From the sequence record MK250027.1: DNA of 64,000 bases; one strand, given 5' to 3'. The notes beneath the pieces are model-generated. The model searched no databases. It was not told where the DNA came from and saw only the letters and a program-made list of their open reading frames with translations. Positions 314-55,040 of the stretch are shown in pieces. The position numbers and the translations under genes are program-made. Each line of letters opens with the position of its first letter. Within the stretch, counting starts at the first letter, position 1.

Positions 314-3300
314 TTATCGCTTATAAATTTTAACTGTTGGATATATATTCTTACCAGTTGTTTCATTAATCACAATAGTTAGAGTATTTAAATTTTCTTT
401 TGTTTCTATATTTGTAGAATAATTTTCATACTTATAATATGTGTTTAAATTAGCTGGTTTTTCAGTTACTATATTTATATTTGAATTTGGTTCTGTGTCT
501 TTTGCATAAAGTTCAACTTCAATATTTGACTATGCATTATAATATACTGATAATGTATGATTTATATAATTTTTCTAACCTGTATATTGAGAATCTTTAA
601 AATAATTCCAATTTTCATTAAATGATTCATTATTTATAAAATGATTAAATATTGCGGATGTTAAATTTATAGTTATAACTGTATTACCTTGATTAATATC
701 AGAAATATTATATGAAGAATCTGAATAATTAACAGATAATATGTCATTCGCAGTAGGATAAACAAATTTATTAATTAATATATAATCATTATGAATAACC
801 ATACAGTGTGAACCTAAGAATGATTTATCATCAATTCCTGTTTTATGTCCATCAATACTTATATAATCATTTTCATTAAGATATTTACGATAATAATTAT
901 TATCCCATGTCGCGCTTAATAATGAACGATTATCTACTAAATAATAATTTTTATTTAATCTCTATAAATTAGTGTCTTCAAATACTTTATTACCTGGATA
1001 ATTCTGTATTCTATTAATATTTTTTATTTTTGTATTAGATTGCAATAAATCAACATTAAGAATATCTCGTAATTCATCATCTATATAAAAATCAACCATA
1101 TTATTCGTATTAGGTGTAAACCATCCGTAATTAAATTTAATCTAATTAGGTATTGATAATGTAAATATTAATGGATTATATTCTTCTGTATTATGTATTA
1201 ATTTAACCTCTGCTTTTTCTGGGATAATATATATATCAATATCATTAGTAAATGTATCAACATATCGTTTTAACTTATCCTTCGGTGTTTCTAATGATAT
1301 TAATTTTGATATATACTTCTTAAAATGTGTTAAATTAGTTCCTGTTATCAATTTCGTGTTAGTTAATAAGTTTGTTTTATCATTTTTATATGATATAATA
1401 AACTAATCACTATTAAGAATATTTGATAATTTTATATTGTTAACATTATTTACATTATTTTGTTTCTTTATAGTTAATCCTAATTTATTTTCATTTAATG
1501 TTATTAATTTCGGATTTAATACATTTGTTATATTTAAATGCTAACTTATATTTTTTCCTATAGTTGTAGTACGTCTTATAACATTTTCAAGGATCTATTT
1601 AGCTGTATGATTATATTCACCATCTGCCTTTGTAATAATATACGCATGACTATTACTTGATATTGAATTTACATGAGTTAATGTACCTGGATAATCAATA
1701 TACTCATAATTTGTTAATACACCAATATCATTATAATTATTAACAGAAACATATTCATTACAATCAACTGAATTTTCCATATTAAATGAAACAAACTATG
1801 GTGAATTAGTTGATAATGTTGTATTTACTATCGGTACATCATACTATGTAAATAATGAAGACCATAAATTATGTTCATCTATTAATGACATTAATTGTTT
1901 ATGAAAATTATTCTTCTTATGAGCATGAATACCATTATTCATACAGTTAAGTGTCCTGAAATCAATATCATATGGTGCGTTAAGAACTGCATAATCAGCA
2001 TAACTCTAATATTCATTTGTTGTAACATTCTTTATGTTAGATGTGCCTTCATGTGCATAATCAATATAGAACTAATGATTAATCAATAAGATGAACCTTT
2101 CTTTTAACGATATATAAATCTCATTAGTTTTTGATAAATCATAATCGGTTAAAACAAATGCTTCAAACCCTGAATAATCTTCAAGATGAATATAACTATT
2201 AACAACCTTTGTATTTAACTTAATATTAAATTTAATACCGGAAAATATAAACTCAAGACTTTTAATATTAGAATTATAATATACAGATGCTGTATCAATA
2301 TTAGTATTATCTATCAATAATTTTTTAATGGAATGCTGTACAGAACCATTTAATATACTTTCCTTATATGTAATTGATTCATTATTAATATACAATATAT
2401 TATCTACTTTATTAGTTACATATTGATTTGTATCATAATCTGCTACATTATAAGTATTTTCACAGAAATTACCATTAAATTCATAATTTTCATTTAATGT
2501 ATTAACATCTAATATGTTATTATTATCATAATATTGTCCATTAGATTTCCATAAACATTGTACAGATGGAACAATAGGATATAATAATTCACTATTACCT
2601 GTATTATTAGGATTTACAAAATAATTATTTGATTTTAATTCTGGAATTACAGTATCATAATTATATTCCTAATATTTTTGTTTGTCTGCTATTTTTAATT
2701 TAGTATTTTCTATAACAGATATTGAATTCAAATTATTTACGTTTATAGTTGTACTTATATATGCTGTTTTAGAAGGTGTTATTATAAATGTCGTTCCTTT
2801 AGACACATTTACTTTATTGAATTTAAGTTTACCATCTAAAACTTCATACATCACTCCATGTTGTATTCTATAATCCGTTTCATCTGTTGCAATAGTTTCA
2901 CCTGCCGGAATATCAATATATAAATTATCCTCATTATGTAATGTTCTGCTTAAATCAATAGTTGTATCTATATCTTTAATATTAGTAATACCCATTATAG
3001 CAACTGCGACTTCTGTAGGTTTATACAAATGAATCTTATTAGTTATTAATAACGAAGGATTAATAGTAGAAATCATGCATGTATTTACATCATATGGATT
3101 TGTTATTACGCATAAATCCTATGTTTTATTAATAAACTACTATTGATTATCTAAACTATAATTCTTATAATTATCTGGTTCCCATACATTATTTCTCAAA
3201 TATCCATTTGTAATATTAAATACATTAACTGTATCATAAATACCATTTGTGTTATAAATTAATGGATACTTAATTTTATTAACTAAGTCACTAATATCTG

Positions 3301-32039: not shown

Positions 32040-33128
32040 ATGGCAAAAGACTTGTATGATATATTAGGTATTGAGAAAGGTTGTAATGATCAGAAAAAGA
32101 TTAAAACTGCATTTAGACAACTTTCTAAGAAATACCATCCAGATATGCAGAGAGGAAAATCAGATGCAGAGGTAAAGGAAGCTGAGGAAAAGTTTAAGGA
32201 TGTTAACCATGCATATGAAGTTTTGAGTGATCCTCAAAAGAAAGAGAATTATGATAATTTTGGTGATGAAAATGGAAGACCAAATCCATTTGGAGGCTCC
32301 GGTGGTTTTAATCCATTTGGTGGTGATTTTGATCCATTTGGAGGATTTAATCCATTTGGAGGATTTGGTGGAAGTTCACGTCAGAAGAAAAATCAGGTTC
32401 AACCAGGTAGAGATATTCAGATGAAGATTCCTGTATCTATTGAAGATATATTTAAGGGAGTTAAGAAGAGTGTTAAATTTAAGAGAAACGTAAGGTGCTC
32501 TGTATGTCATGGTGCAGGTGGAACTGGTCAGAAGACATGTCCAAAGTGTCATGGAACTGGTAGAATTATTCATCAGCAGCAATTTGCAATGGGGTCATTC
32601 TCTATTCATGAAGAAGTTTGTCCATTGTGTCATGGAACTGGTTTTTATGTAGAGAACAAATGTGATAAGTGTGGTGGTTCTGGATTTGATAAGAAAGAAG
32701 TAAAACTTGATATTGAATTACCATCTGGTGTACAGAATGGAGAATATCGTGTATATAGTGGTGAAGGATCCGAATCAAAGAATGTTTCAGGACCTAATGG
32801 TAATTTTATCGCTATTGCAGATTATACGTTTGATACAGATAGGTATCAGGTTGATGGGTTGAATGTAGTTGAACATATTCATGTCCCTTATTATAAATTG
32901 TTGCTTGGCTGTTCATATACTCTTAATATTCCTTCTGGTGTAAGTAAGGTTGTTAAGTTGAAGAGTTGTATTAAGGAAGGAACAATTATGAGATTAACTG
33001 GTGAAGGACTTAAGAGACCTGATGGTCAAAAGGGTGATTACTTCATTTGTGTTCATTATCAATTTCCAGAAGACCTTAGTGCGAATGATAGAGCATTGCT
33101 TGAAGTTATAGAGAAAAACAATAAATAA
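32040..33128 (+). CDS. dnaJ: DnaJ/Hsp40 co-chaperone
   Basis: J-domain HPD, G/F region, four CxxCxGxG repeats. Confidence 0.95.
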   Translation: MAKDLYDILGIEKGCNDQKKIKTAFRQLSKKYHPDMQRGKSDAEVKEAEEKFKDVNHAYEVLSDPQKKENYDNFGDENGRPNPFGGSGGFNPFGGDFDPFGGFNPFGGFGGSSRQKKNQVQPGRDIQMKIPVSIEDIFKGVKKSVKFKRNVRCSVCHGAGGTGQKTCPKCHGTGRIIHQQQFAMGSFSIHEEVCPLCHGTGFYVENKCDKCGGSGFDKKEVKLDIELPSGVQNGEYRVYSGEGSESKNVSGPNGNFIAIADYTFDTDRYQVDGLNVVEHIHVPYYKLLLGCSYTLNIPSGVSKVVKLKSCIKEGTIMRLTGEGLKRPDGQKGDYFICVHYQFPEDLSANDRALLEVIEKNNK

Positions 33129-43016: not shown

Positions 43017-43088
43017 TGGGGATTAGTATAGTGGTCAGTACAGAGGTCTCTAAAACCTTTAGGCCGAGTTCGAGTCTCGGATCCCCAA
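43017..43088 (+). tRNA. Amber suppressor tRNA (anticodon CUA), Gln-type
   Basis: Acceptor TGGGGAT/ATCCCCA (U1-A72), D stem GTAT/GTAC, anticodon arm GAGGT-CTCTAAA-ACCTT, T arm CCGAG-TTCGAGT-CTCGG. Confidence 0.92.
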
Positions 43089-49655: not shown

Positions 49656-50258
49656 ATGAAAGAAAACGAATTTATTGATGAAGTCGACGAGACAGAAGTA
49701 AATCCAGATATTGAAAATAATAACACAGAAGATACAAGTTCAGATATTAATGAAGATGATATTGTTACAGATGAAGATGATAATGAGTATGTAACAAAAG
49801 AATATGCTGATAATCTTATTAATGAACTTAATAAAGCAAAGCAAGAAGCAAAATCATGGAAAGATCGTTATACATATCTTTATTCTGATTGGGATACATA
49901 TAAGCGTAGAGTATTAAGAGAAAAAGATAATATTTCTAAATATGGAAGTGAGAAAGTGATTAAGGATATTCTTCCTATTATTGATGATTTTGATAGAGCA
50001 TTTATGCATATGTCTGATGAGCAGAAGGAAGGAATTTCTATTATTTACAAGAATTTTATTTCTGTATTGGAGAATCATGATGTTACTATCATTCCTGCAA
50101 ATCATGGTGATGATTTTAATGATAATCTTCATGAAGCTGTTTCAGTTGTACCTTCAATGGATGATAGTGAGAAAGGTAAGATTGCTGATTGTATCACAAA
50201 GGGATATATGTTGCATGATAAAGTTATTAGATATGCAAAGGTAATTGTATTCAATTAA
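49656..50258 (+). CDS. grpE: GrpE nucleotide exchange factor
   Basis: DILPIIDDFDRA, FNDNLHEAV, KGYMLHDKVIRYAKVIV. Confidence 0.92.
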   Translation: MKENEFIDEVDETEVNPDIENNNTEDTSSDINEDDIVTDEDDNEYVTKEYADNLINELNKAKQEAKSWKDRYTYLYSDWDTYKRRVLREKDNISKYGSEKVIKDILPIIDDFDRAFMHMSDEQKEGISIIYKNFISVLENHDVTIIPANHGDDFNDNLHEAVSVVPSMDDSEKGKIADCITKGYMLHDKVIRYAKVIVFN

Positions 50259-50502
50259 TATATCTAATATCATCGTCATCATATAATTGTTTAAGCATAT
50301 CATCAATATTCAATTTTTGAAATTGTTTCTACTATATACTCATATCAAAATTAAATCTATTTTCTGATTTATTATATTTTGCAATAGTTTTATCAAAATC
50401 AAATTGATTATCAGTATCAAATATAGAACGGAGTGTATAGTTTTTACCATTATGACGTAATGTTTTTACAAATTCTCTATTAGTTGGATATTTTCTATTC
50501 AT
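50251..50502 (-). CDS. Small hypothetical protein (83 aa); TAG=Gln
   Basis: MNRKYPTNREFVKTLRHNGKNY..., two adjacent TAG, TGA stop. Confidence 0.5.
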
Positions 50503-50607
50503 CTTTAAATATATACATTAATTATAATTTATTTATTCAGAATTGTTAATGAATATTAAATATAGAAAATAACTAAGTAAATATTTTTATATTTAGAAAA
50601 TATGTTG

Positions 50608-50615
50608 TATCTTTG
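50608..50615 (+). promoter_or_regulatory. Bacteroidota -7 promoter element
   Basis: TATCTTTG. Confidence 0.75.
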
Positions 50616-50639
50616 CAGTGTTAATAATTATTAAAGAAT

Positions 50640-51170
50640 ATGAATACAAATGAAGCAAAAGTAATCAACTGGTTTGATATTAAGGACGATGTAAAAGTCA
50701 TTAATGAGAATACTAAACATAAAAATAATGTTGAGAATAAAGTAAAACATAATCATGCAAATAATATTAATATATTTGATGGGTCTATTCAAGTAAATCA
50801 TGCTATTTGCAAAAAAACTACTGCAAAGATTATTGAGTCATTTGAAAGTGTACTTGTACATAATGTAGCTGATAAAGTAAAGTATCATTGTGATGGTGGC
50901 ATCTTTAATGGTAAGACAGTTTGTATTAAATGTCGTGCTAATGCATATAATACAGGTGGAAACTTTACATTCACAGAAGATGATTTAACAGCGGATATGA
51001 TTGCTGTTTATTACTATGATGAGAATAGTAATCTTGGACATTGGTTTATTTGTGATAGAAATCGTTTGAGCAAGAATAAGATGAAACAATCACAAAATAT
51101 TTATATTGTTCATCAAGATTATATTAAGAAACATGCATGGTGTGAATATACGGTAACGTTTAATAAATAA
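50640..51170 (+). CDS. Early hypothetical protein
   Basis: ORF. Confidence 0.75.
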   Translation: MNTNEAKVINWFDIKDDVKVINENTKHKNNVENKVKHNHANNINIFDGSIQVNHAICKKTTAKIIESFESVLVHNVADKVKYHCDGGIFNGKTVCIKCRANAYNTGGNFTFTEDDLTADMIAVYYYDENSNLGHWFICDRNRLSKNKMKQSQNIYIVHQDYIKKHAWCEYTVTFNK

Positions 51171-51272
51171 TTTTTAATTTTTTTGAGAAAAAAGTTTGTA
51201 AAATTATAGACTTTTGAAAAAAATTTAGATATATATTATATAGAATAAATTAAAATAATAAATAAGATAATT

Positions 51273-51401
51273 ATGAAAACTTTAAATATGACATATGGTA
51301 TGCATCCAGTTTGTGGTATGGTTCACATGTTCCCATGTGGAGGTGGTCGACCTATGTCTTTACTTGAGGATTTAAAGTTTTCTTGTATGTTGCAATCATA
51401 A
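51273..51401 (+). CDS. Putative Met/Cys-rich leader peptide (42 aa)
   Basis: MKTLNMTYGMHPVCGMVHMFPCGGGRPMSLLEDLKFSCMLQS: 7 Met, 3 Cys. Confidence 0.6.
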   Translation: MKTLNMTYGMHPVCGMVHMFPCGGGRPMSLLEDLKFSCMLQS

Positions 51402-51430
51402 CCGGTTAACTCAACATATATACAATTTTT

Positions 51431-51479
51431 AAACCTCAAGTAGAAAATATCAGAAAATCTACTTGAGGTTTTATTTTTT
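51431..51479 (+). terminator. Terminator/attenuator hairpin ahead of the tRNA cluster
   Basis: AAACCTCAAGTAGA / TCTACTTGAGGTTT followed by a T tract. Confidence 0.75.
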
Positions 51480-51484
51480 AATAT

Positions 51485-51559
51485 GGTCCGTCTGGTGTAA
51501 TTGGTAACATGACAGATTGTGATTCTGTTGTTCAGGGTTCGAGTCCCTAACGTGACCCA
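51485..51559 (+). tRNA. tRNA-His(GTG), imperfect acceptor stem
   Basis: ACAGA-TTGTGAT-TCTGT anticodon arm, G-1/C73, TTCGAGT loop. Confidence 0.8.
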
Positions 51560-51576
51560 AAATATTATTAATATTT

Positions 51577-51652
51577 AGCGTAGTGGCCCAGTTGGTCTAA
51601 GGCACCTGTTTTGGGAACAGGTTAGATCGCACGTTCGAATCGTGTCTACGCT
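51577..51652 (+). tRNA. tRNA-Pro(TGG)
   Basis: AGCGTAG/CTACGCT; CCTGT-TTTGGGA-ACAGG. Confidence 0.9.
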
Positions 51653-51767
51653 ACAGAATAGAGTTCTTATGTTATCCTTACATAACTAAAAGAACTAAAA
51701 CTTAAGATGGTAAGGCATCTATATAATGGAAGTTCACGCCCAAGGGAAGATTTATAAGTTATAATTT

Positions 51768-51842
51768 ACTCTGTTAACTCAATTGGATTAGAGTATTTCG
51801 CTACGAACGAAAAGGTTGTGAGTTCGATTCTTACACAGAGTA
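51768..51842 (+). tRNA. tRNA-Arg(ACG)
   Basis: ACTCTGT/ACAGAGT; TTTCG-CTACGAA-CGAAA. Confidence 0.9.
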
Positions 51843-51851
51843 CAAGTAAAT

Positions 51852-51924
51852 ATCTCTATAGCTCAAAAGAATAGAGCAGTTCTCTCCTAAAGAACAGATA
51901 ACAGTTTGATTCTGTTTGGAGATA
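51852..51924 (+). tRNA. tRNA-Arg(CCT), T-loop TTTGATT
   Basis: ATCTCTA/TGGAGAT; GTTCT-CTCCTAA-AGAAC. Confidence 0.8.
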
Positions 51925-52441
51925 CAAACAAAATTAACATTATTAATATAGACTTTTATCTATTAATGGAATATATTATAATGTAATTTGAATTTTAAAA
52001 TACTATTAAAATGTGGGGAGTAGAGTTCCCATCATTTAAAGAGTTTCGAGAAGAAGGTATTGTATGTAAAAGCATTAAGTTTCGTTTAGCTGACGAAATG
52101 TTACCAAGCGGTGATGGTATTCATGTACATAGGTCCATCCGTATAACTTCAGGGAATCGTAAGCATTAATCTTGGAGAGTACAGTTTTTAGTCTGAAATG
52201 ACGAATTTTCCTACTGGTTGCTCAATATGATATTAAGAGTCGGAGATAATTATTTGTAAGTTCCACAATTACGAGAGGAAAATGGAATTAAGTTGAAGGA
52301 ATAACGTGATTATTCTTGGTGTGATTAGGAGAACGAAAATAACCAGTATGTATGGTGTACGTGTGCATACAGAAACAAAGCAAATAATAGCCCTTAGAGA
52401 ATTTGCCGAGTAAAGGACATTAATAGTATTTTTATTTATTT

Positions 52442-52519
52442 GCAGTATTGGTGTAGCTGGAGGCGCATTCCTGACTTCCACTCAGGCGGCTTGCGCGAGT
52501 TCGATTCTCGCATACTGCT
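52442..52519 (+). tRNA. tRNA-Gly(TCC)
   Basis: GCAGTAT/ATACTGC, U73; CCTGA-CTTCCAC-TCAGG. Confidence 0.9.
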
Positions 52520-52728
52520 CATAATAAGGTAGAGTATCAATGAATGATAGAGAATAAGTTCCTGTCTGAGATCAACCTATCTGTAGTATTTAGATAATTT
52601 TATGTATACATAAAATTATAACGAAGTTTATATTACCTGTAGTCGTAATATTCAAATCGTTCGTTGACATAGTTATTCCGTGATGTAGTAGAGAGTTATA
52701 ATCAGCATATAACAAACGGAATATTTTT

Positions 52729-52801
52729 GCGGAAGTATATCAATGGCTAGATAGATACGTTGCCAACGTATAGGTTGTGAGTTCGAGTCTCATTTTCCGC
52801 T
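52729..52801 (+). tRNA. tRNA-Gly(GCC)
   Basis: GCGGAAG/TTTCCGC, U73; ATACG-TTGCCAA-CGTAT. Confidence 0.9.
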
Positions 52802-52944
52802 CTATAAACGTTTCGAGGTTTTAAAGTTGAATGTACCACCTTGCGCTTGTGTTGCTATTCACCTTTGAGTAATAGTAAAAAACTTATGGTACCAAGGATG
52901 TTTTCTACGTTGTTACATCCATTTTTTTGAATATGATAGAATAT

Positions 52945-53089
52945 GAGAGTCAATACAGCAAATTAAATTGATAGATAATGTTTGAAGATTATACACAAAA
53001 AGACTCTTGAATCAAATTATAATGGGAGGCAATACAGCAAATTTTGTATTAAGGATTATTTTGCTAAAATAATATTCTATACGCCTCCT
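52945..53089 (+). ncRNA. Two tandem structured RNA elements sharing CAATACAGCAAATT
   Basis: Copy 1 closed by AGAGTC/GACTCT, copy 2 by GGAGGC/GCCTCC. Confidence 0.5.
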
Positions 53090-53096
53090 GATACTT

Positions 53097-53179
53097 GACG
53101 AGTTGCTGAGAATTGGTTAATCGCACGGTCTGCAAAACCGTTGGTCTTTGACATGTCGGTTCGAGTCCGACACTCGTCT
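53097..53179 (+). tRNA. tRNA-Cys(GCA) with a 13-nt variable arm
   Basis: GACGAGT/ACTCGTC, U73; ACGGT-CTGCAAA-ACCGT. Confidence 0.9.
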
Positions 53180-53212
53180 CTTTAGATTAATATTTTAAAA
53201 TACTATTATAAG

Positions 53213-53473
53213 ATGAAGAAATTATTTTCTTTTATATTTTATACAATAATGATTACATCATTATTTGGATGTGCAACAAAACAAGATACAATTAATTATC
53301 TTAATAATTATGTACATAAAAATATTTCTGAAAATTGTATAAACATTTTCAGTAATCAAAGATATAATGAATATATTGATACTGTTACTAATATTAAATA
53401 TTATGTTTATATAGATTATAATAGTAACATCAATATAACAGATAAAAGATTTCCGAGGTATACAGCTCGTTAA
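53213..53473 (+). CDS. Small putative lipoprotein
   Basis: MKK + hydrophobic stretch + LFGC lipobox. Confidence 0.65.
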   Translation: MKKLFSFIFYTIMITSLFGCATKQDTINYLNNYVHKNISENCINIFSNQRYNEYIDTVTNIKYYVYIDYNSNINITDKRFPRYTAR

Positions 53474-53771
53474 AAGAGGTTGACTTGTATATTCTACATT
53501 ACCTACTGTATAACAATATATGAGTGTACATGTGAAAAGATACACCATGTTCTATTAATATAAAAATGTACATATATATGGTAACAATTATATTAATATC
53601 AGATGCATGACATATATGAATATAATAACGAATTCGTGAAATGACTATTGTTTTTAGTTGCTTGGAAACGGCGAACTTAGTTTTATCAATAGAGGAAGTA
53701 TAATATTAAAACAGTTAAATGTAAATCTTTCTGAGACAATGGGGACAACTTGTAGTAAGAGAGTATTTTTA

Positions 53772-53886
53772 GCTAGTATAGTTTAGTGGCAAAACACCCA
53801 AATCCCAGGGATAAGAGATGGTTTGAGTTGTAGTGTACAATACAATATACAGAAGATTTTGGTGAGTTCGATTCTCACTGCTAGCT
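53772..53886 (+). ncRNA. tRNA-like RNA (Gly-like ends) with an extra ~44 nt in the central region
   Basis: GCTAGTA/TGCTAGC-U, D arm GTTT/AAAC, T arm GTGAG-TTCGATT-CTCAC; no canonical anticodon arm. Confidence 0.6.
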
Positions 53887-53892
53887 CAATAT

Positions 53893-54022
53893 GAAGTGCG
53901 TAGTTTAAATGGTAAAACATCCTTTGAGTAGGACTCTGACGAGAGATAGATAACAATGTTAGACTCTATTTAATTCCATTGTTTTATTAATGAGTATAGG
54001 TTCGAATCCTATGGTACTTCCA
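53893..54022 (+). ncRNA. tRNA-like RNA with ~60-nt central expansion
   Basis: GAAGTGC/GTACTTC, D arm GTTT/AAAC, T arm ATAGG-TTCGAAT-CCTAT; irregular anticodon arm. Confidence 0.6.
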
Positions 54023-54310
54023 AATTTATATAGATAAAAAGATTCTGGTGATTAGATAAAACATTATAAGAAAAGAGAAAAAACTTAGGTAACTGCAGAT
54101 AACTAAGGGTCGTAAGAGTATATGAAGAAAGATGAACTATGGATACCTCCTTATAATGCGTTTTATCAATAATTAAAGTAGTCTATAATATAAGTTCATT
54201 AACGTTATAGAAAAAACGAATATTGATAAGTCTACTATGCAGATGGGGCATTGAGAATGCCGTATAGTTCTAAAGCATCGTAAAACAGTTTATTTATATA
54301 TTTTTAATAT

Positions 54311-54385
54311 GGCTAGATAGCTCAGTTCGGTTAGAGCGCGTGATTCATATCCACGAGGTCGTGTGTTCGATCCACACTCTTGCTA
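54311..54385 (+). tRNA. tRNA with CAT anticodon (Met or Ile2)
   Basis: GGCTAGA/TCTTGCT; CGTGA-TTCATAT-CCACG; GTGTG-TTCGATC-CACAC. Confidence 0.85.
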
Positions 54386-54464
54386 CAGTGTTTTTAGTTG
54401 TTTATTAATGATTTGAGATATATCAATTTTTGGTATATCTCTTTTTTATTTAGAAAATAATTTG

Positions 54465-54472
54465 TATCTTTG
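54465..54472 (+). promoter_or_regulatory. Bacteroidota -7 promoter element
   Basis: TATCTTTG. Confidence 0.75.
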
Positions 54473-54498
54473 TATTATTAATTTAAATTTAATAGGTT

Positions 54499-54990
54499 AT
54501 GAAGAAATATAAAGTATATCAACTTCGTCGAGAAAATGAAGTTATTATCGATGATAATGAAATATATGATGCAAGAATGAAAGTTATTGCAGAGTATGAA
54601 ATTAAATCAGATAGAATTGATTTTGATATTATTTCAGAAGATATATGGCATTTATGTAATGTTCATTGTTGGGATAGATCATGGCATGCAGGTGAAGGTG
54701 TTCAGAAAGATGATATTATATTAACTCCTACATCTGACTTTGATGGTTTCTGTAATAGTGATATTGTCGTAGAAACCGAAGATGGACTTTATCTTGCAGA
54801 ATCATTTGGATTTATGAAAGTAAATTCGTTAGAAGATGCATCATATAGAATCATTGCGAGATTTCCGTTTATTTCGTGGGATAATATGAGAAATAAGAAT
54901 GAATATGATAAAGATAAACTATCTGAAGTAAAACGTAAGATTGATTATGAGAATAAATTGATGTTAGAAGAATATAAAAATAAAAAATAA
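54499..54990 (+). CDS. Early hypothetical protein
   Basis: ORF. Confidence 0.75.
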   Translation: MKKYKVYQLRRENEVIIDDNEIYDARMKVIAEYEIKSDRIDFDIISEDIWHLCNVHCWDRSWHAGEGVQKDDIILTPTSDFDGFCNSDIVVETEDGLYLAESFGFMKVNSLEDASYRIIARFPFISWDNMRNKNEYDKDKLSEVKRKIDYENKLMLEEYKNKK

Positions 54991-55040
54991 TTTTTTGGAA
55001 TAATTTCTCCTAAATATTTTTTTATTTAAAAAAGAACATG

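Follow-up and report, generated by a model that had tools for sequence, protein, structure and literature searches.

We identified, in the giant gut phage Lak, a predicted ribosome-operated attenuator in front of the tRNA genes. Each of the two large tRNA gene clusters of the phage lies behind the same private putative promoter, a short reading frame rich in the codons read by that cluster's own tRNAs (an enrichment that is weak by itself for the second cluster), and a switchable terminator. This arrangement looks like a feedback valve on the phage's tRNA supply, although it has not been tested experimentally. The analysis started from a window of 64,000 nucleotides of Prevotella megaphage Lak-B7/B8 (MK250027.1). 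For comparison, we used Lak-B2, A1 and C1 together with IMG/VR records, while the complete genome from which the window derives was not included. The features of the first leader are collected in the table below.

Features of the first tRNA-cluster leader and its surroundings (positions in the 64,000-nucleotide window)
Feature	Position	Strand	Sequence	Description
Promoter region (function inferred)	51184..51243	+		Shared by the two tRNA-cluster leaders
Promoter core	51208-51236	+	AGACTTTTGAAAAAAATTTAGATATATAT	Invariant, 29 nt
Leader ORF	51273..51401	+	MKTLNMTYGMHPVCGMVHMFPCGGGRPMSLLEDLKFSCMLQS	42 codons, with 7 Met and 3 Cys
Region 1	51275..51287	+	GAAAACTTTAAAT	Codons 1-5; pairs with 51370-51382 (anti-antiterminator P1, 13 bp, perfect)
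Codon tract	51297..51356	+	GMHPVCGMVHMFPCGGGRPM	Codons 9-28
Region 2	51359..51382	+	TTTACTTGAGGATTTAAA (51359-51376); core TACTTGAG	51359-51376 pairs with region 3 (antiterminator; 11 bp, a 1-nt bulge, then 6 bp); 51370-51382 pairs with region 1
Intermediate hairpin	51384..51420	+	TGTATGTTG / CAACATATA	Stop codon TAA (51399-51401) in its loop; brings regions 2 and 3 together
Region 3	51427..51444	+	AAACCTCAAGTAGA (51431-51444)	Terminator 5' arm (51431-51444) plus the TTTA flank
Region 4	51458..51480	+	TCTACTTGAGGTTT (51458-51471); TTTTATTTTTT	Terminator 3' arm (51458-51471; 14-bp stem) and T tract to 51480
tRNA cluster	51485..54386	+		His-GTG (starts at 51485), Pro-TGG, Arg-ACG, Arg-CCT, Gly-TCC, Gly-GCC, Cys-GCA, two tRNA-like genes with insertions, and a CAT tRNA at 54311
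Probable internal promoter	51947-51983			May feed the distal part of the cluster independently
Closing hairpin with T tract	54415-54441			Closes the cluster

The original prediction had described a Met/Cys-rich 42-codon ORF, an intrinsic terminator just before tRNA-His, and a segment inside the ORF that nearly duplicates the terminator 3' arm and can pair with the 5' arm. Reading of the sequence, a list of ORFs and tRNA detection with ARAGORN confirmed every one of these elements, and the observation is real. Four nucleotides (AATA) separate the T tract from tRNA-His. Two features had been overlooked: the perfect pairing of region 1 with region 2, and the fact that the enriched codons are those for Gly, His, Pro, Cys, Arg and Met rather than for Met and Cys only.

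The ORF begins 37 nt after the promoter core and is preceded by an A/U-rich, unstructured 5' UTR with A at position -3. No Shine-Dalgarno sequence is present, as expected for a Bacteroidota host. Loss of the leader ORF and of the internal repeat in relatives had been named in advance as an outcome that would speak against attenuation. We found instead that the ATG and the -3 A are invariant, that the ORF is open in all ~30 relatives recovered, and that the core of region 2 is invariant. One relative carries TAG at codon 8, which Lak is reported to read as Gln, consistent with the suppressor tRNA-CUA in the window.

Folding of the alternative structures, one of the analyses originally suggested as a check, revealed a full four-region geometry. 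The antiterminator is the minimum-energy fold (MFE) of every transcript prefix ending before the terminator 3' arm, and region 3 is paired to region 2 in such prefixes in 19 of 22 variants. In contrast, the MFE of the full-length leader contains P1 plus the terminator in all 22 variants. The complementarity between regions 2 and 3 is more than chance: the best duplex between the terminator 5' arm and the upstream 144 nt has an energy of -17.8 kcal/mol, whereas 2000 dinucleotide shuffles gave a mean of -8.2 (sd 1.9) and none reached the observed value (p<0.0005 in Lak-B). In most relatives the antiterminator is weaker than in this window. In the Lak-A/C lineage the ninth G of the core is T and the duplex is weaker (-12.4, p=0.03), and in the majority lineage it comprises only 8 bp plus 5 A-U pairs (p=0.03). 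A simulated ribosome at codons 1 to about 25 leaves the antiterminator as the MFE, while at codon 28 through the stop it is abolished. However, the antiterminator also wins in the fold without a ribosome, so that the default state would be read-through. The ability of P1 to outcompete the 2:3 pairing is therefore doubtful, and its role in the scheme is not clear.

Covariation in relatives had likewise been proposed as a test, and the helices were examined with RNAalifold and a custom script for the pair counts. P1 and the intermediate hairpin are both present in the consensus, and the intermediate hairpin is also in the MFE. We found one compensatory double change, at pair 51389/51415 of the intermediate hairpin, which changes from G-C to A-U in the variants L024/L025, and nine one-sided changes that preserve pairing. 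All relatives belong to one narrow clade at 84-99% identity, so this covariation rests on few events. In P1, four pairs carry changes, of which three keep pairing (G-C/G-U, C-G/U-G, U-G/U-A) and a fourth, near the helix end, is broken (A-U to A-A in 2 sequences). The terminator stem is invariant while its loop is almost completely replaced between lineages; in variant L021 two changes become G-U pairs. The untranslated 3' half of the intermediate hairpin is invariant in nearly all relatives, whereas codon 33, next to the invariant core of region 2, is the most variable site (GAT/GAA/TGT/CGT).

The constraint on the leader acts on the RNA rather than on the peptide. The leader is 92-100% identical between Lak-B and Lak-A, compared with 70-85% for the upstream gene and about 90% for tRNA-His. 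Synonymous sites are 7-10 times more conserved than in the neighbouring gene (pS 0.04-0.08 against 0.38-0.55), and variable columns number 18/118 among paired and 32/83 among unpaired positions (p=2.4e-4). In contrast, pN/pS is about 0.6-1.6, and the variable columns show no third-position bias (7/11/12 by codon position).

These data bear on the possibility that the unit is an independent small gene, encoding a Cys/His/Met/Gly-rich micropeptide (for example metal-binding) or a small RNA, with the tRNAs made by constitutive leakage through the terminator or from other promoters and the alternative pairing without a regulatory role. Promoter, ORF and terminator do form a complete unit, and Met/His/Cys-rich repeats recall metal-binding motifs. 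Furthermore, a DnaJ-like zinc finger in the same window reaches the same Gly/His/Pro/Cys/Arg density, showing that real domains can look like this. We nevertheless consider this explanation unlikely, since the peptide is not under purifying selection, Cys and His residues are replaced in variants, and synonymous sites and the untranslated hairpin are the most conserved parts. The antiterminator complementarity also lies beyond that of shuffled sequences in two unrelated leaders, and the same private promoter precedes a compositionally opposite ORF at the other tRNA cluster. In a protein search with the leader peptide, all 12 protein clusters found are Lak variants without a recorded Pfam domain, and no homologue was found outside Lak phages; the peptide of the second leader was not searched in this way. 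Structure and complex prediction were not used, because the peptide shows no sign of being a folded product.

The codon content of the leader matches the tRNAs encoded behind it. Codons 9-28 comprise 13 codons for Gly, His, Pro, Cys or Arg plus 4 for Met, so that 17 of 20 codons specify amino acids of the downstream tRNAs. The background frequency of the first five amino acids is 0.13 in the long ORFs of the window (0.15 with Met; binomial 1e-6 or lower). This is the only 20-residue stretch with 17 Gly/His/Pro/Cys/Arg/Met among 45,687 stop-free stretches in six frames, and by manual translation the other two frames of the same DNA give about 4-5. The His, Pro, Gly, Cys and Arg-ACG/CCT tRNAs occur only in this cluster of the phage genome, and the order of the cluster is conserved in relatives. 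Of the three CAT tRNAs only one is clearly initiator-like, and the one in this cluster was not assigned to elongator Met or Ile2. Met/Cys starvation as the specific signal was rejected as too narrow, because Met10, Cys14 and Cys38 are replaced in variants and Gly, Pro, His and Arg are equally enriched. The regulatory codons do not form a run of one amino acid, and several are lost in individual variants (C14Y, H18Y, R26Q, P21S/Q). They do lie where a simulated ribosome leaves the 2:3 pairing intact, and the same logic holds in the second leader. These observations correspond to the regulatory codons of an attenuator in modified form, and on their own they do not settle whether the tract acts as such.

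The other large Lak tRNA cluster (Trp, Ile, Asn, Val, Ala, Tyr, Asp, Gln, Met, Phe, Lys, Glu, Thr and others) provides an independent replicate. An alignment of the regions upstream of both leaders from Lak-B and Lak-A shows about 70 nt shared, with the 29-nt core invariant. With up to 3 mismatches, the core occurs exactly twice in each ~545-kb genome, both times before a leader, and in IMG/VR it occurs only before these two leaders. The second leader contains an unrelated 37-codon ORF, MKQFNNIYKNNVDIYADSFNWYEQDCYADMLRDIVIS, without Gly, Pro or His, in which 30 of 32 classifiable codons belong to its own cluster. It also has its own 1:2, 2:3 and 3:4 helices and a T tract about 20 nt before tRNA-Trp, although in one variant of this leader the antiterminator is marginal (p=0.06). 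Own-versus-other codon counts in the two leaders, tallied by hand against the tRNA anticodons, are 14:14 and 2:30 (Fisher's exact test, p=2.5e-4). The own-codon enrichment of the second leader is weak by itself, because its set already makes up about 72% of Lak proteins.

The second leader also weighs against two further explanations. The first is an RNA-only leader, in which a structured domain closed by P1 (51275-51382) would bind a ligand, a protein or a tRNA to decide between antiterminator and terminator, the ORF being incidental. The architecture matches that of a transcriptional riboswitch, with a P1-closed domain whose 3' strand overlaps the antiterminator, followed by a terminator; the constraint is at the nucleotide level, and the start codon is buried in P1. 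However, this reading does not explain the frame-specific match between codons 9-28 and the downstream tRNAs, nor the complementary composition of the second leader. The two leaders share a promoter but no sequence or common fold in the putative aptamer, and in-frame expansions of 9 and 18 nt (the MVH repeats) are tolerated inside the domain. Rfam scans of 50500-55000 and sub-regions returned only tRNAs and nothing in the leader; no Rfam 15 family, including T-box, matches 51240-51484 on the + strand at E up to 10, and the only hit is a chance miRNA match to the hairpin on the minus strand. We therefore regard the RNA-only reading as unlikely. The second explanation is coincidence, that is, an ordinary terminator of an upstream transcript, a chance ORF and a chance repeat. 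AT-rich genomes contain many short inverted repeats, and we estimate about two 13-bp inverted repeats within 150 nt per 64 kb by chance. Coincidence is nonetheless very unlikely, as several independent features coincide and are duplicated at a second locus, with conservation well above that of the flanking genes.

We also looked for comparable leaders before the suppressor tRNA-CUA (position 43017 of the window), tRNA-UUA, and tRNA-Lys at 202 kb in Lak-B2, and found none, only an ordinary small ORF or gene plus a hairpin. At the suppressor tRNA(UUA) locus a terminator directly before a tRNA follows an ordinary-looking gene, so that a terminator followed by a tRNA is not in itself diagnostic. 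A search for related loci with the upstream 176-aa protein returned the same three IMG/VR contigs, and a metagenome scan with the hairpin sequence returned only near-identical leaders. A more divergent leader was seen only as a pig-gut RNA contig, which keeps the promoter and hairpin but has 149 unlike letters in place of the ORF. Contigs covering the leader exist in 3 of 4 metatranscriptome runs, and one runs through the terminator into tRNA-His. These are Logan contigs, from which transcript ends, strand and termination efficiency could not be read, and DNA carry-over in the RNA libraries is not excluded.

Taken together, we consider it more likely than not that the leader is a ribosome-mediated (leader-peptide) transcription attenuator gating a tRNA operon. 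In this view, transcription from the private promoter first yields the leader ORF. If the codons of the 9-28 tract, including Arg(CGA), are decoded slowly because cognate charged tRNA is scarce, as early in infection or when host tRNAs are depleted, the lead ribosome would lag upstream of region 2. Region 2 would then pair with region 3 as soon as the latter is made, the terminator could not form, and RNA polymerase would run into tRNA-His and beyond. If decoding is fast, the ribosome would reach codon 28 or later, or the stop, where it covers region 2 or sits between regions 2 and 3 on the intermediate hairpin; regions 3 and 4 would then form the terminator, ending transcription at 51475-51480. 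Afterwards region 1 would pair with region 2, burying the start codon and locking the released leader. The result would be negative feedback of tRNA supply on tRNA gene transcription, although the probable internal promoter could feed the Gly, Cys and Met tRNAs independently. The sequence and computation establish the ORF, the three mutually exclusive helices and their conservation, the codon-tRNA match and the duplicate system at the second cluster, whereas translation of the ORF, the control of termination by stalling and the direction of the feedback are our inference; the dependence of read-through on leader translation and on cognate charged tRNA was not measured.

The interpretation in the original prediction is thus partly supported. 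Its core idea, a leader ORF with alternative terminator and antiterminator hairpins gating a phage tRNA operon, gains support from the four-region geometry, the RNA-level conservation and the second leader. Besides the weaker antiterminator in most relatives, two points need correction. A ribosome reaching the stop was proposed to cover the antiterminator strand, but at the stop codon it would cover about 51384-51411, and would instead sit between regions 2 and 3 and melt the hairpin that brings them together; ribosomes at codons 28 and later cover region 2. Furthermore, stalling had been attributed to Met/Cys codons, whereas the likely input is decoding capacity for the codons of the downstream tRNA set, meaning tRNA supply.

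A broader hypothesis, which we judge about as likely as not, is that Lak megaphages run a codon-matched tRNA homeostat, in which each of the two operons is gated by its own leader ORF sampling the codons read by that operon's tRNAs. Transcription of each tRNA set would be switched on when ribosomes decode those codons slowly and off when the tRNAs are plentiful. This would be the first attenuator whose regulated product is the tRNA itself, and would give a phage a direct read-out of host decoding capacity, including loss of host tRNAs to starvation or anticodon nucleases. Phage tRNA genes are usually discussed only in terms of codon usage or defence evasion, and how their expression is controlled is essentially unknown. 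A leader ORF whose codons mirror the tRNAs behind it would be a simple, testable feedback circuit linking decoding speed to tRNA synthesis, extending classical attenuation to a new class of target and to a Bacteroidota-infecting megaphage. The design is compact and modular, with one promoter and swappable leaders for different tRNA sets, and gives a search rule for other large phages, namely a short ORF plus terminator before a tRNA array with a codon/tRNA match.

Bacterial tRNA operons are thought to be controlled at the promoter, through stringent and growth-rate control. As in bacterial tRNA operons and the T4 tRNA region, tRNAs are made as multi-tRNA precursors from an upstream promoter and processed by RNase P, but we know of no tRNA operon gated by a leader ORF and attenuator, and literature searches found none. 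T-box riboswitches of Gram-positive bacteria also use terminator/antiterminator leaders that report the state of a specific tRNA pool. However, the T-box binds uncharged tRNA directly through a specifier codon and the T-box bulge, needs no translation, and regulates synthetase, biosynthesis or transporter genes, and the Lak antiterminator has no UGGN bulge. In pyrBI/pyrE-type coupling attenuators and drug-sensing leader peptides (ermC, cat), the distance between the lead ribosome and RNA polymerase, or a stalled ribosome on a short ORF, likewise decides between alternative leader structures, but the signals are UTP-dependent polymerase pausing or antibiotic-stalled ribosomes and the targets are protein-coding genes. 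The leader-peptide attenuators of amino-acid biosynthetic operons (trpL, hisL, leuL, thrL, ilvL, pheL) and of pheST (pheM) in Proteobacteria share with the Lak leader a promoter-proximal short ORF, four RNA regions forming 1:2, 2:3 and 3:4 alternatives, and an intrinsic terminator just before the regulated genes, with the fold chosen by ribosome position on codons whose decoding reflects the regulated resource (in Lak, an inference). In Lak, by contrast, only tRNA genes and non-coding spacers lie downstream, rather than biosynthetic enzymes or synthetases, and the informative codons are a mixed set for six amino acids, located between regions 1 and 2 rather than in region 1. Region 1 contains the start codon, a ribosome at the stop would block the 2:3 pairing sterically rather than by covering region 2, and the system is phage-borne, in a Bacteroidota host without Shine-Dalgarno sequences.

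The 1.4 kb surrounding the finding are 100% identical to Prevotella phages Lak-B7 and Lak-B8, 99% identical to the other Lak-B genomes, and about 81–82% identical to Lak-A and Lak-C. These are megaphages of about 545 kb that infect gut Prevotella and read TAG as Gln. The window, which has a G+C content of 26%, carries a suppressor tRNA with anticodon CUA.

The original prediction described a leader ORF, an intrinsic terminator in front of tRNA-His, and an internal element able to pair with the 5' arm of that terminator, and each of these was found where it had been placed. The complementarity between the terminator 5' arm and the upstream 144 nt amounts to -17.8 kcal/mol, whereas 2000 dinucleotide shuffles gave a mean of -8.2 (sd 1.9) and none was as low. 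The mechanism proposed from these elements, a ribosome-operated attenuator, is partly supported by our analysis, with the refinements described below.

Coordinates of the features discussed in the text, in window positions unless a relative is named
Feature	Position	Sequence	Remarks
DnaJ-type CxxCxGxG zinc-finger stretch	about 32480-32560		
Suppressor tRNA, anticodon CUA	43017		
GrpE homologue	49656-50258		
Neighbouring gene as compared with the leader ORF	50640-51170		528 nt
Leader ORF	51273-51401		42 codons, 7 Met and 3 Cys
Region 1	51275-51287	GAAAACTTTAAAT	codons 1-5 including the G of the ATG
Met-Val-His unit	51318-51326	ATGGTTCAC	9 nt
Region 2, internal element pairing with region 3 (2:3)	51359-51376	TTTACTTGAGGATTTAAA	
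Region 2, perfect complement of region 1 (1:2)	51370-51382	ATTTAAAGTTTTC	
Intermediate hairpin	51384-51420		stop codon in its loop
Estimated cover of a ribosome at the stop codon	about 51384-51411		
Region 3, partner of the internal element (2:3)	51427-51444		
Terminator hairpin (3:4)	51431-51444 / 51458-51471		13-nt loop
Tract following the terminator hairpin	to 51480	TTTTATTTTTT	
tRNA-His	starts at 51485		
Site between tRNA-His and tRNA-Pro of the insertion in relatives	51559-51576		about 1 kb insert
Promoter-like site (probable internal promoter)	51947-51983		
Spacer between tRNA-Arg(CCT) and tRNA-Gly(TCC)	51997-52431		
Two tRNA-like genes	53772-53886 and 53894-54020		57- and 69-nt insertions
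Leader 2 ORF, Lak-B2	L038:965-1078	MKQFNNIYKNNVDIYADSFNWYEQDCYADMLRDIVIS	37 codons
Leader ORF variant, metagenomic	L021:1501-1629		TAG at codon 8
ORF, hairpin and suppressor tRNA (UUA), Lak-B2	L040:73-252 and 328-400		at 346 kb

Folding of the alternative structures, which had been suggested in advance as a way to examine the prediction, revealed a fourth region that the prediction had not included: region 1, at the very start of the ORF, is the perfect complement of part of region 2. Three states follow. A transcript ending at 51426 forms this 13-bp helix (1:2), small internal hairpins, and the intermediate hairpin. A transcript ending at 51445 or 51457 instead pairs regions 2 and 3 (2:3), enclosing the intermediate hairpin. 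The full leader returns to 1:2 together with the terminator (3:4), with an energy of -60 kcal/mol and a z-score of -4.2 against shuffles. The same behavior is predicted across relatives, as the terminator and 1:2 appear in 22 of 22 variants, and 2:3 appears in the prefix fold of 19 of 22.

To simulate translation, we masked the RNA up to the leading edge of a ribosome and refolded it. With the A site at codons 1 to about 25, the antiterminator remains the best fold, whereas it is lost from codon 28 to the stop. In the absence of a ribosome 2:3 also wins, which leaves the role of 1:2 unclear and is a weak point of the model. The original prediction held that a ribosome reaching the stop would cover the antiterminator strand. 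However, such a ribosome would cover not region 2 but the hairpin between regions 2 and 3, and we infer that the linkers of 7 and 12 nt are too short to let 2:3 form around it.

We collected 22 distinct versions of the leader, from Lak-A1, A2, B2, B3 and C1, three IMG/VR contigs, and contigs that encode variant peptides. A further metagenome scan returned ten more loci, of which nine carried the full ORF, mostly with peptides already seen, while the tenth contig began inside it. All belong to the Lak clade, and the narrowness of this clade is a weak point. One metagenomic variant (L021) has TAG at leader codon 8 (TAT to TAG) and is an open frame only under TAG=Gln, such that leader translation in that phage would itself depend on the phage suppressor tRNA. 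In Lak-A/C and several metagenomic relatives, about 1 kb is inserted between tRNA-His and tRNA-Pro, as seen in L001/L003 and L027/L028. In L027 the insert carries a 222-aa ORF and in L028 a 333-aa ORF with a DUF559 hit, and it is probably a mobile endonuclease-type insertion in the tRNA cluster.

Failure of the leader ORF and its internal repeat to be conserved had been named beforehand as an outcome that would count against the prediction. Between Lak-B and Lak-A, the leader (51280-51440) is 92–100% identical, compared with 70–85% for the upstream 176-aa gene and about 90% for tRNA-His. Synonymous divergence is 0.04–0.08 in the leader ORF against 0.38–0.55 in the neighboring gene, while pN/pS in the leader is about 0.6–1.6, and variable columns split 7/11/12 over the three codon positions. 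Peptide replacements include C14Y, H18Y, P21S/Q, R26Q and C38F, and codon 33 is D, E, C or R. The Met-Val-His unit is present in one, two or three tandem copies in different Lak relatives (including L024, L029, L030 and L033), and these 9- and 18-nt expansions lengthen the leader to 45 or 48 codons. Within the Lak-B lineage, a comparison of Lak-B7 with Lak-B3 (L005) shows 5 changes in the 129 nt of the leader ORF, 4 of them non-synonymous, whereas the neighboring gene has a pS of 0.02 and a pN of 0.002. Between lineages the leader is far more conserved than the gene. A few leader sites seem to turn over fast while the rest are frozen.

The amino-acid sequence as such is therefore not what is conserved; the RNA is. 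Variable columns account for 18 of 118 positions in predicted pairs against 32 of 83 outside them (p=2.4e-4), and the terminator loop is almost entirely replaced between lineages while its stem is invariant. Covariation, another point put forward for testing at the outset, was limited: nine pairs change on one side to another standard pair, and pair 51389/51415 in the intermediate hairpin changes from G-C to A-U in the relatives L024/L025. One observation counts against the antiterminator. In most lineages its core loses its ninth pair (TACTTGAGG becomes TACTTGAGT/C), and the flank also changes without compensation, leaving -12 kcal/mol (p=0.03–0.06).

Codons 9–28 of the leader read G M H P V C G M V H M F P C G G G R P M. 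The tRNAs behind the terminator are His-GTG, Pro-TGG, Arg-ACG, Arg-CCT, Gly-TCC, Gly-GCC, Cys-GCA and a CAT tRNA, whose identity we did not resolve, which is a weak point of the model. Thus, 13 of the 20 codons (G, H, P, C, and R as CGA), plus 4 Met, are served by this cluster. In the long ORFs of the window these residues make up 13% (15% with Met), corresponding to binomial probabilities of about 1e-6 and 1e-11. Among 45,687 stop-free 20-residue windows in all six frames, this is the only one with 17, and only a DnaJ-type zinc finger equals its 13 without Met. A DnaJ-type CxxCxGxG stretch in the window, together with a GrpE homologue (Pfam GrpE is recorded on the orthologues in relatives), suggests a phage-encoded chaperone set. 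The other two frames of the same DNA, translated by hand and not by script, give about 4–5, so the enrichment is frame-specific and not a by-product of local G+C. Lak-B2 has 34 tRNA-like genes, and His, Pro, Gly, Cys and Arg-ACG/CCT tRNAs are found only in this cluster. The two tRNA-like genes with insertions match the Rfam tRNA model end to end, the insertions lying after the anticodon-arm region. ARAGORN calls neither with default settings, and with introns allowed and a lowered score threshold it calls only the first, as Gly-CCC with an intron. Their identity was not settled.

The other large cluster of Lak-B2 (L038) provides an independent second case with the same layout. It encodes Trp, Ile x3, Asn, Val, Ala, Tyr, Asp, Gln x2, Met x2, Phe, Lys x2, Arg-TCT, Glu, Leu-AAG and Thr. 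The promoter region is nearly identical over about 70 nt, with a 29-nt invariant core, and is followed by the leader 2 ORF and a hairpin AAATCTTGAAAC / GTTTCAAGATTT with a T tract, with tRNA-Trp about 20 nt further on. With up to 3 mismatches, the 29-nt core occurs exactly twice in Lak-B2 and twice in Lak-A1, and in all of IMG/VR it occurs only in front of these two leaders. The leader 2 peptide is unrelated to leader 1 and has no Gly, Pro or His. In a hand tally of codons against the tRNA anticodons, 30 of its 32 classifiable codons belong to its own cluster. Own-versus-other counts for the two leaders are 14:14 and 2:30 (Fisher p=2.5e-4), although leader 2 taken alone is only mildly enriched, because its set is already about 72% of Lak proteins. 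A terminator is also placed directly before a tRNA at a further Lak-B2 locus (L040), where a G+C-rich, lysine/alanine-rich 59-codon ORF is followed by a hairpin with T tract that abuts the suppressor tRNA with anticodon UUA, here without an attenuator-like leader.

Leader 2 has the same RNA logic. UAACAUAU near codons 5–7 pairs with AUAUGUUA near codons 29–31, and AUGUUACGAGAU then pairs alternatively with the terminator 5' arm AUCUUGAAACAU. Shuffle tests give p<0.0005 in Lak-B and 0.01–0.06 in other lineages, and the ribosome simulation gives the same boundary at codons 26–28. Between lineages, codons 25–29 change from DCYAD to VRCAC/VRCAY while lengthening the 1:2 helix, which again points to RNA rather than peptide constraint.

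We next compared Logan contigs from four metatranscriptome runs with positions 50640-52440. Three runs hold contigs covering the leader (51270-51417, 51286-51418 and 51278-51527), the last of which continues through the terminator into tRNA-His. As contigs cannot show ends or strand, and DNA carry-over is not excluded, this shows only that the leader is probably transcribed and that read-through molecules may exist. The spacer between tRNA-Arg(CCT) and tRNA-Gly(TCC) is covered by very deep contigs in these libraries, with depths of 113, 1866 and 77–129, against 2–14 for the leader. In one run the contig is circularly permuted, with 52431 joined to 51997 through 32 other letters, which suggests a tandem or circular form. 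The spacer has no Rfam match and a fold z-score of only -1.1, and may represent an abundant non-coding RNA of ~435 nt inside the tRNA cluster. The probable internal promoter may feed the distal tRNAs, which is a weak point for control of the cluster by the leader.

The most economical reading of these data is a leader-peptide attenuator whose input is the speed of decoding of the codons served by the operon's own tRNAs, and whose output would be transcription of those tRNAs. The arrangement of the leaders, their predicted alternative folds, their conservation and their codon content come from sequence and computation, whereas the regulatory behavior is inferred, in the absence of any functional data. 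Four observations favor this reading over an RNA-only switch or an unrelated small gene: the frame-specific codon match, its mirror image at the second operon, the private shared promoter, and the coincidence between the end of the enriched tract and the start of region 2. The leader lacks a Shine-Dalgarno sequence, but the host is a member of the Bacteroidota, which initiates translation without Shine-Dalgarno pairing on A/U-rich leaders, and this absence is therefore not an objection.

Literature searches for attenuation of tRNA operons, in phages or bacteria, and for regulation of Lak phage tRNAs found nothing relevant in the library searched, and we know of no described case. The class of mechanism is classical, whereas the target (tRNA genes), the mixed codon set matched to the operon, and the paired design in a megaphage are new.
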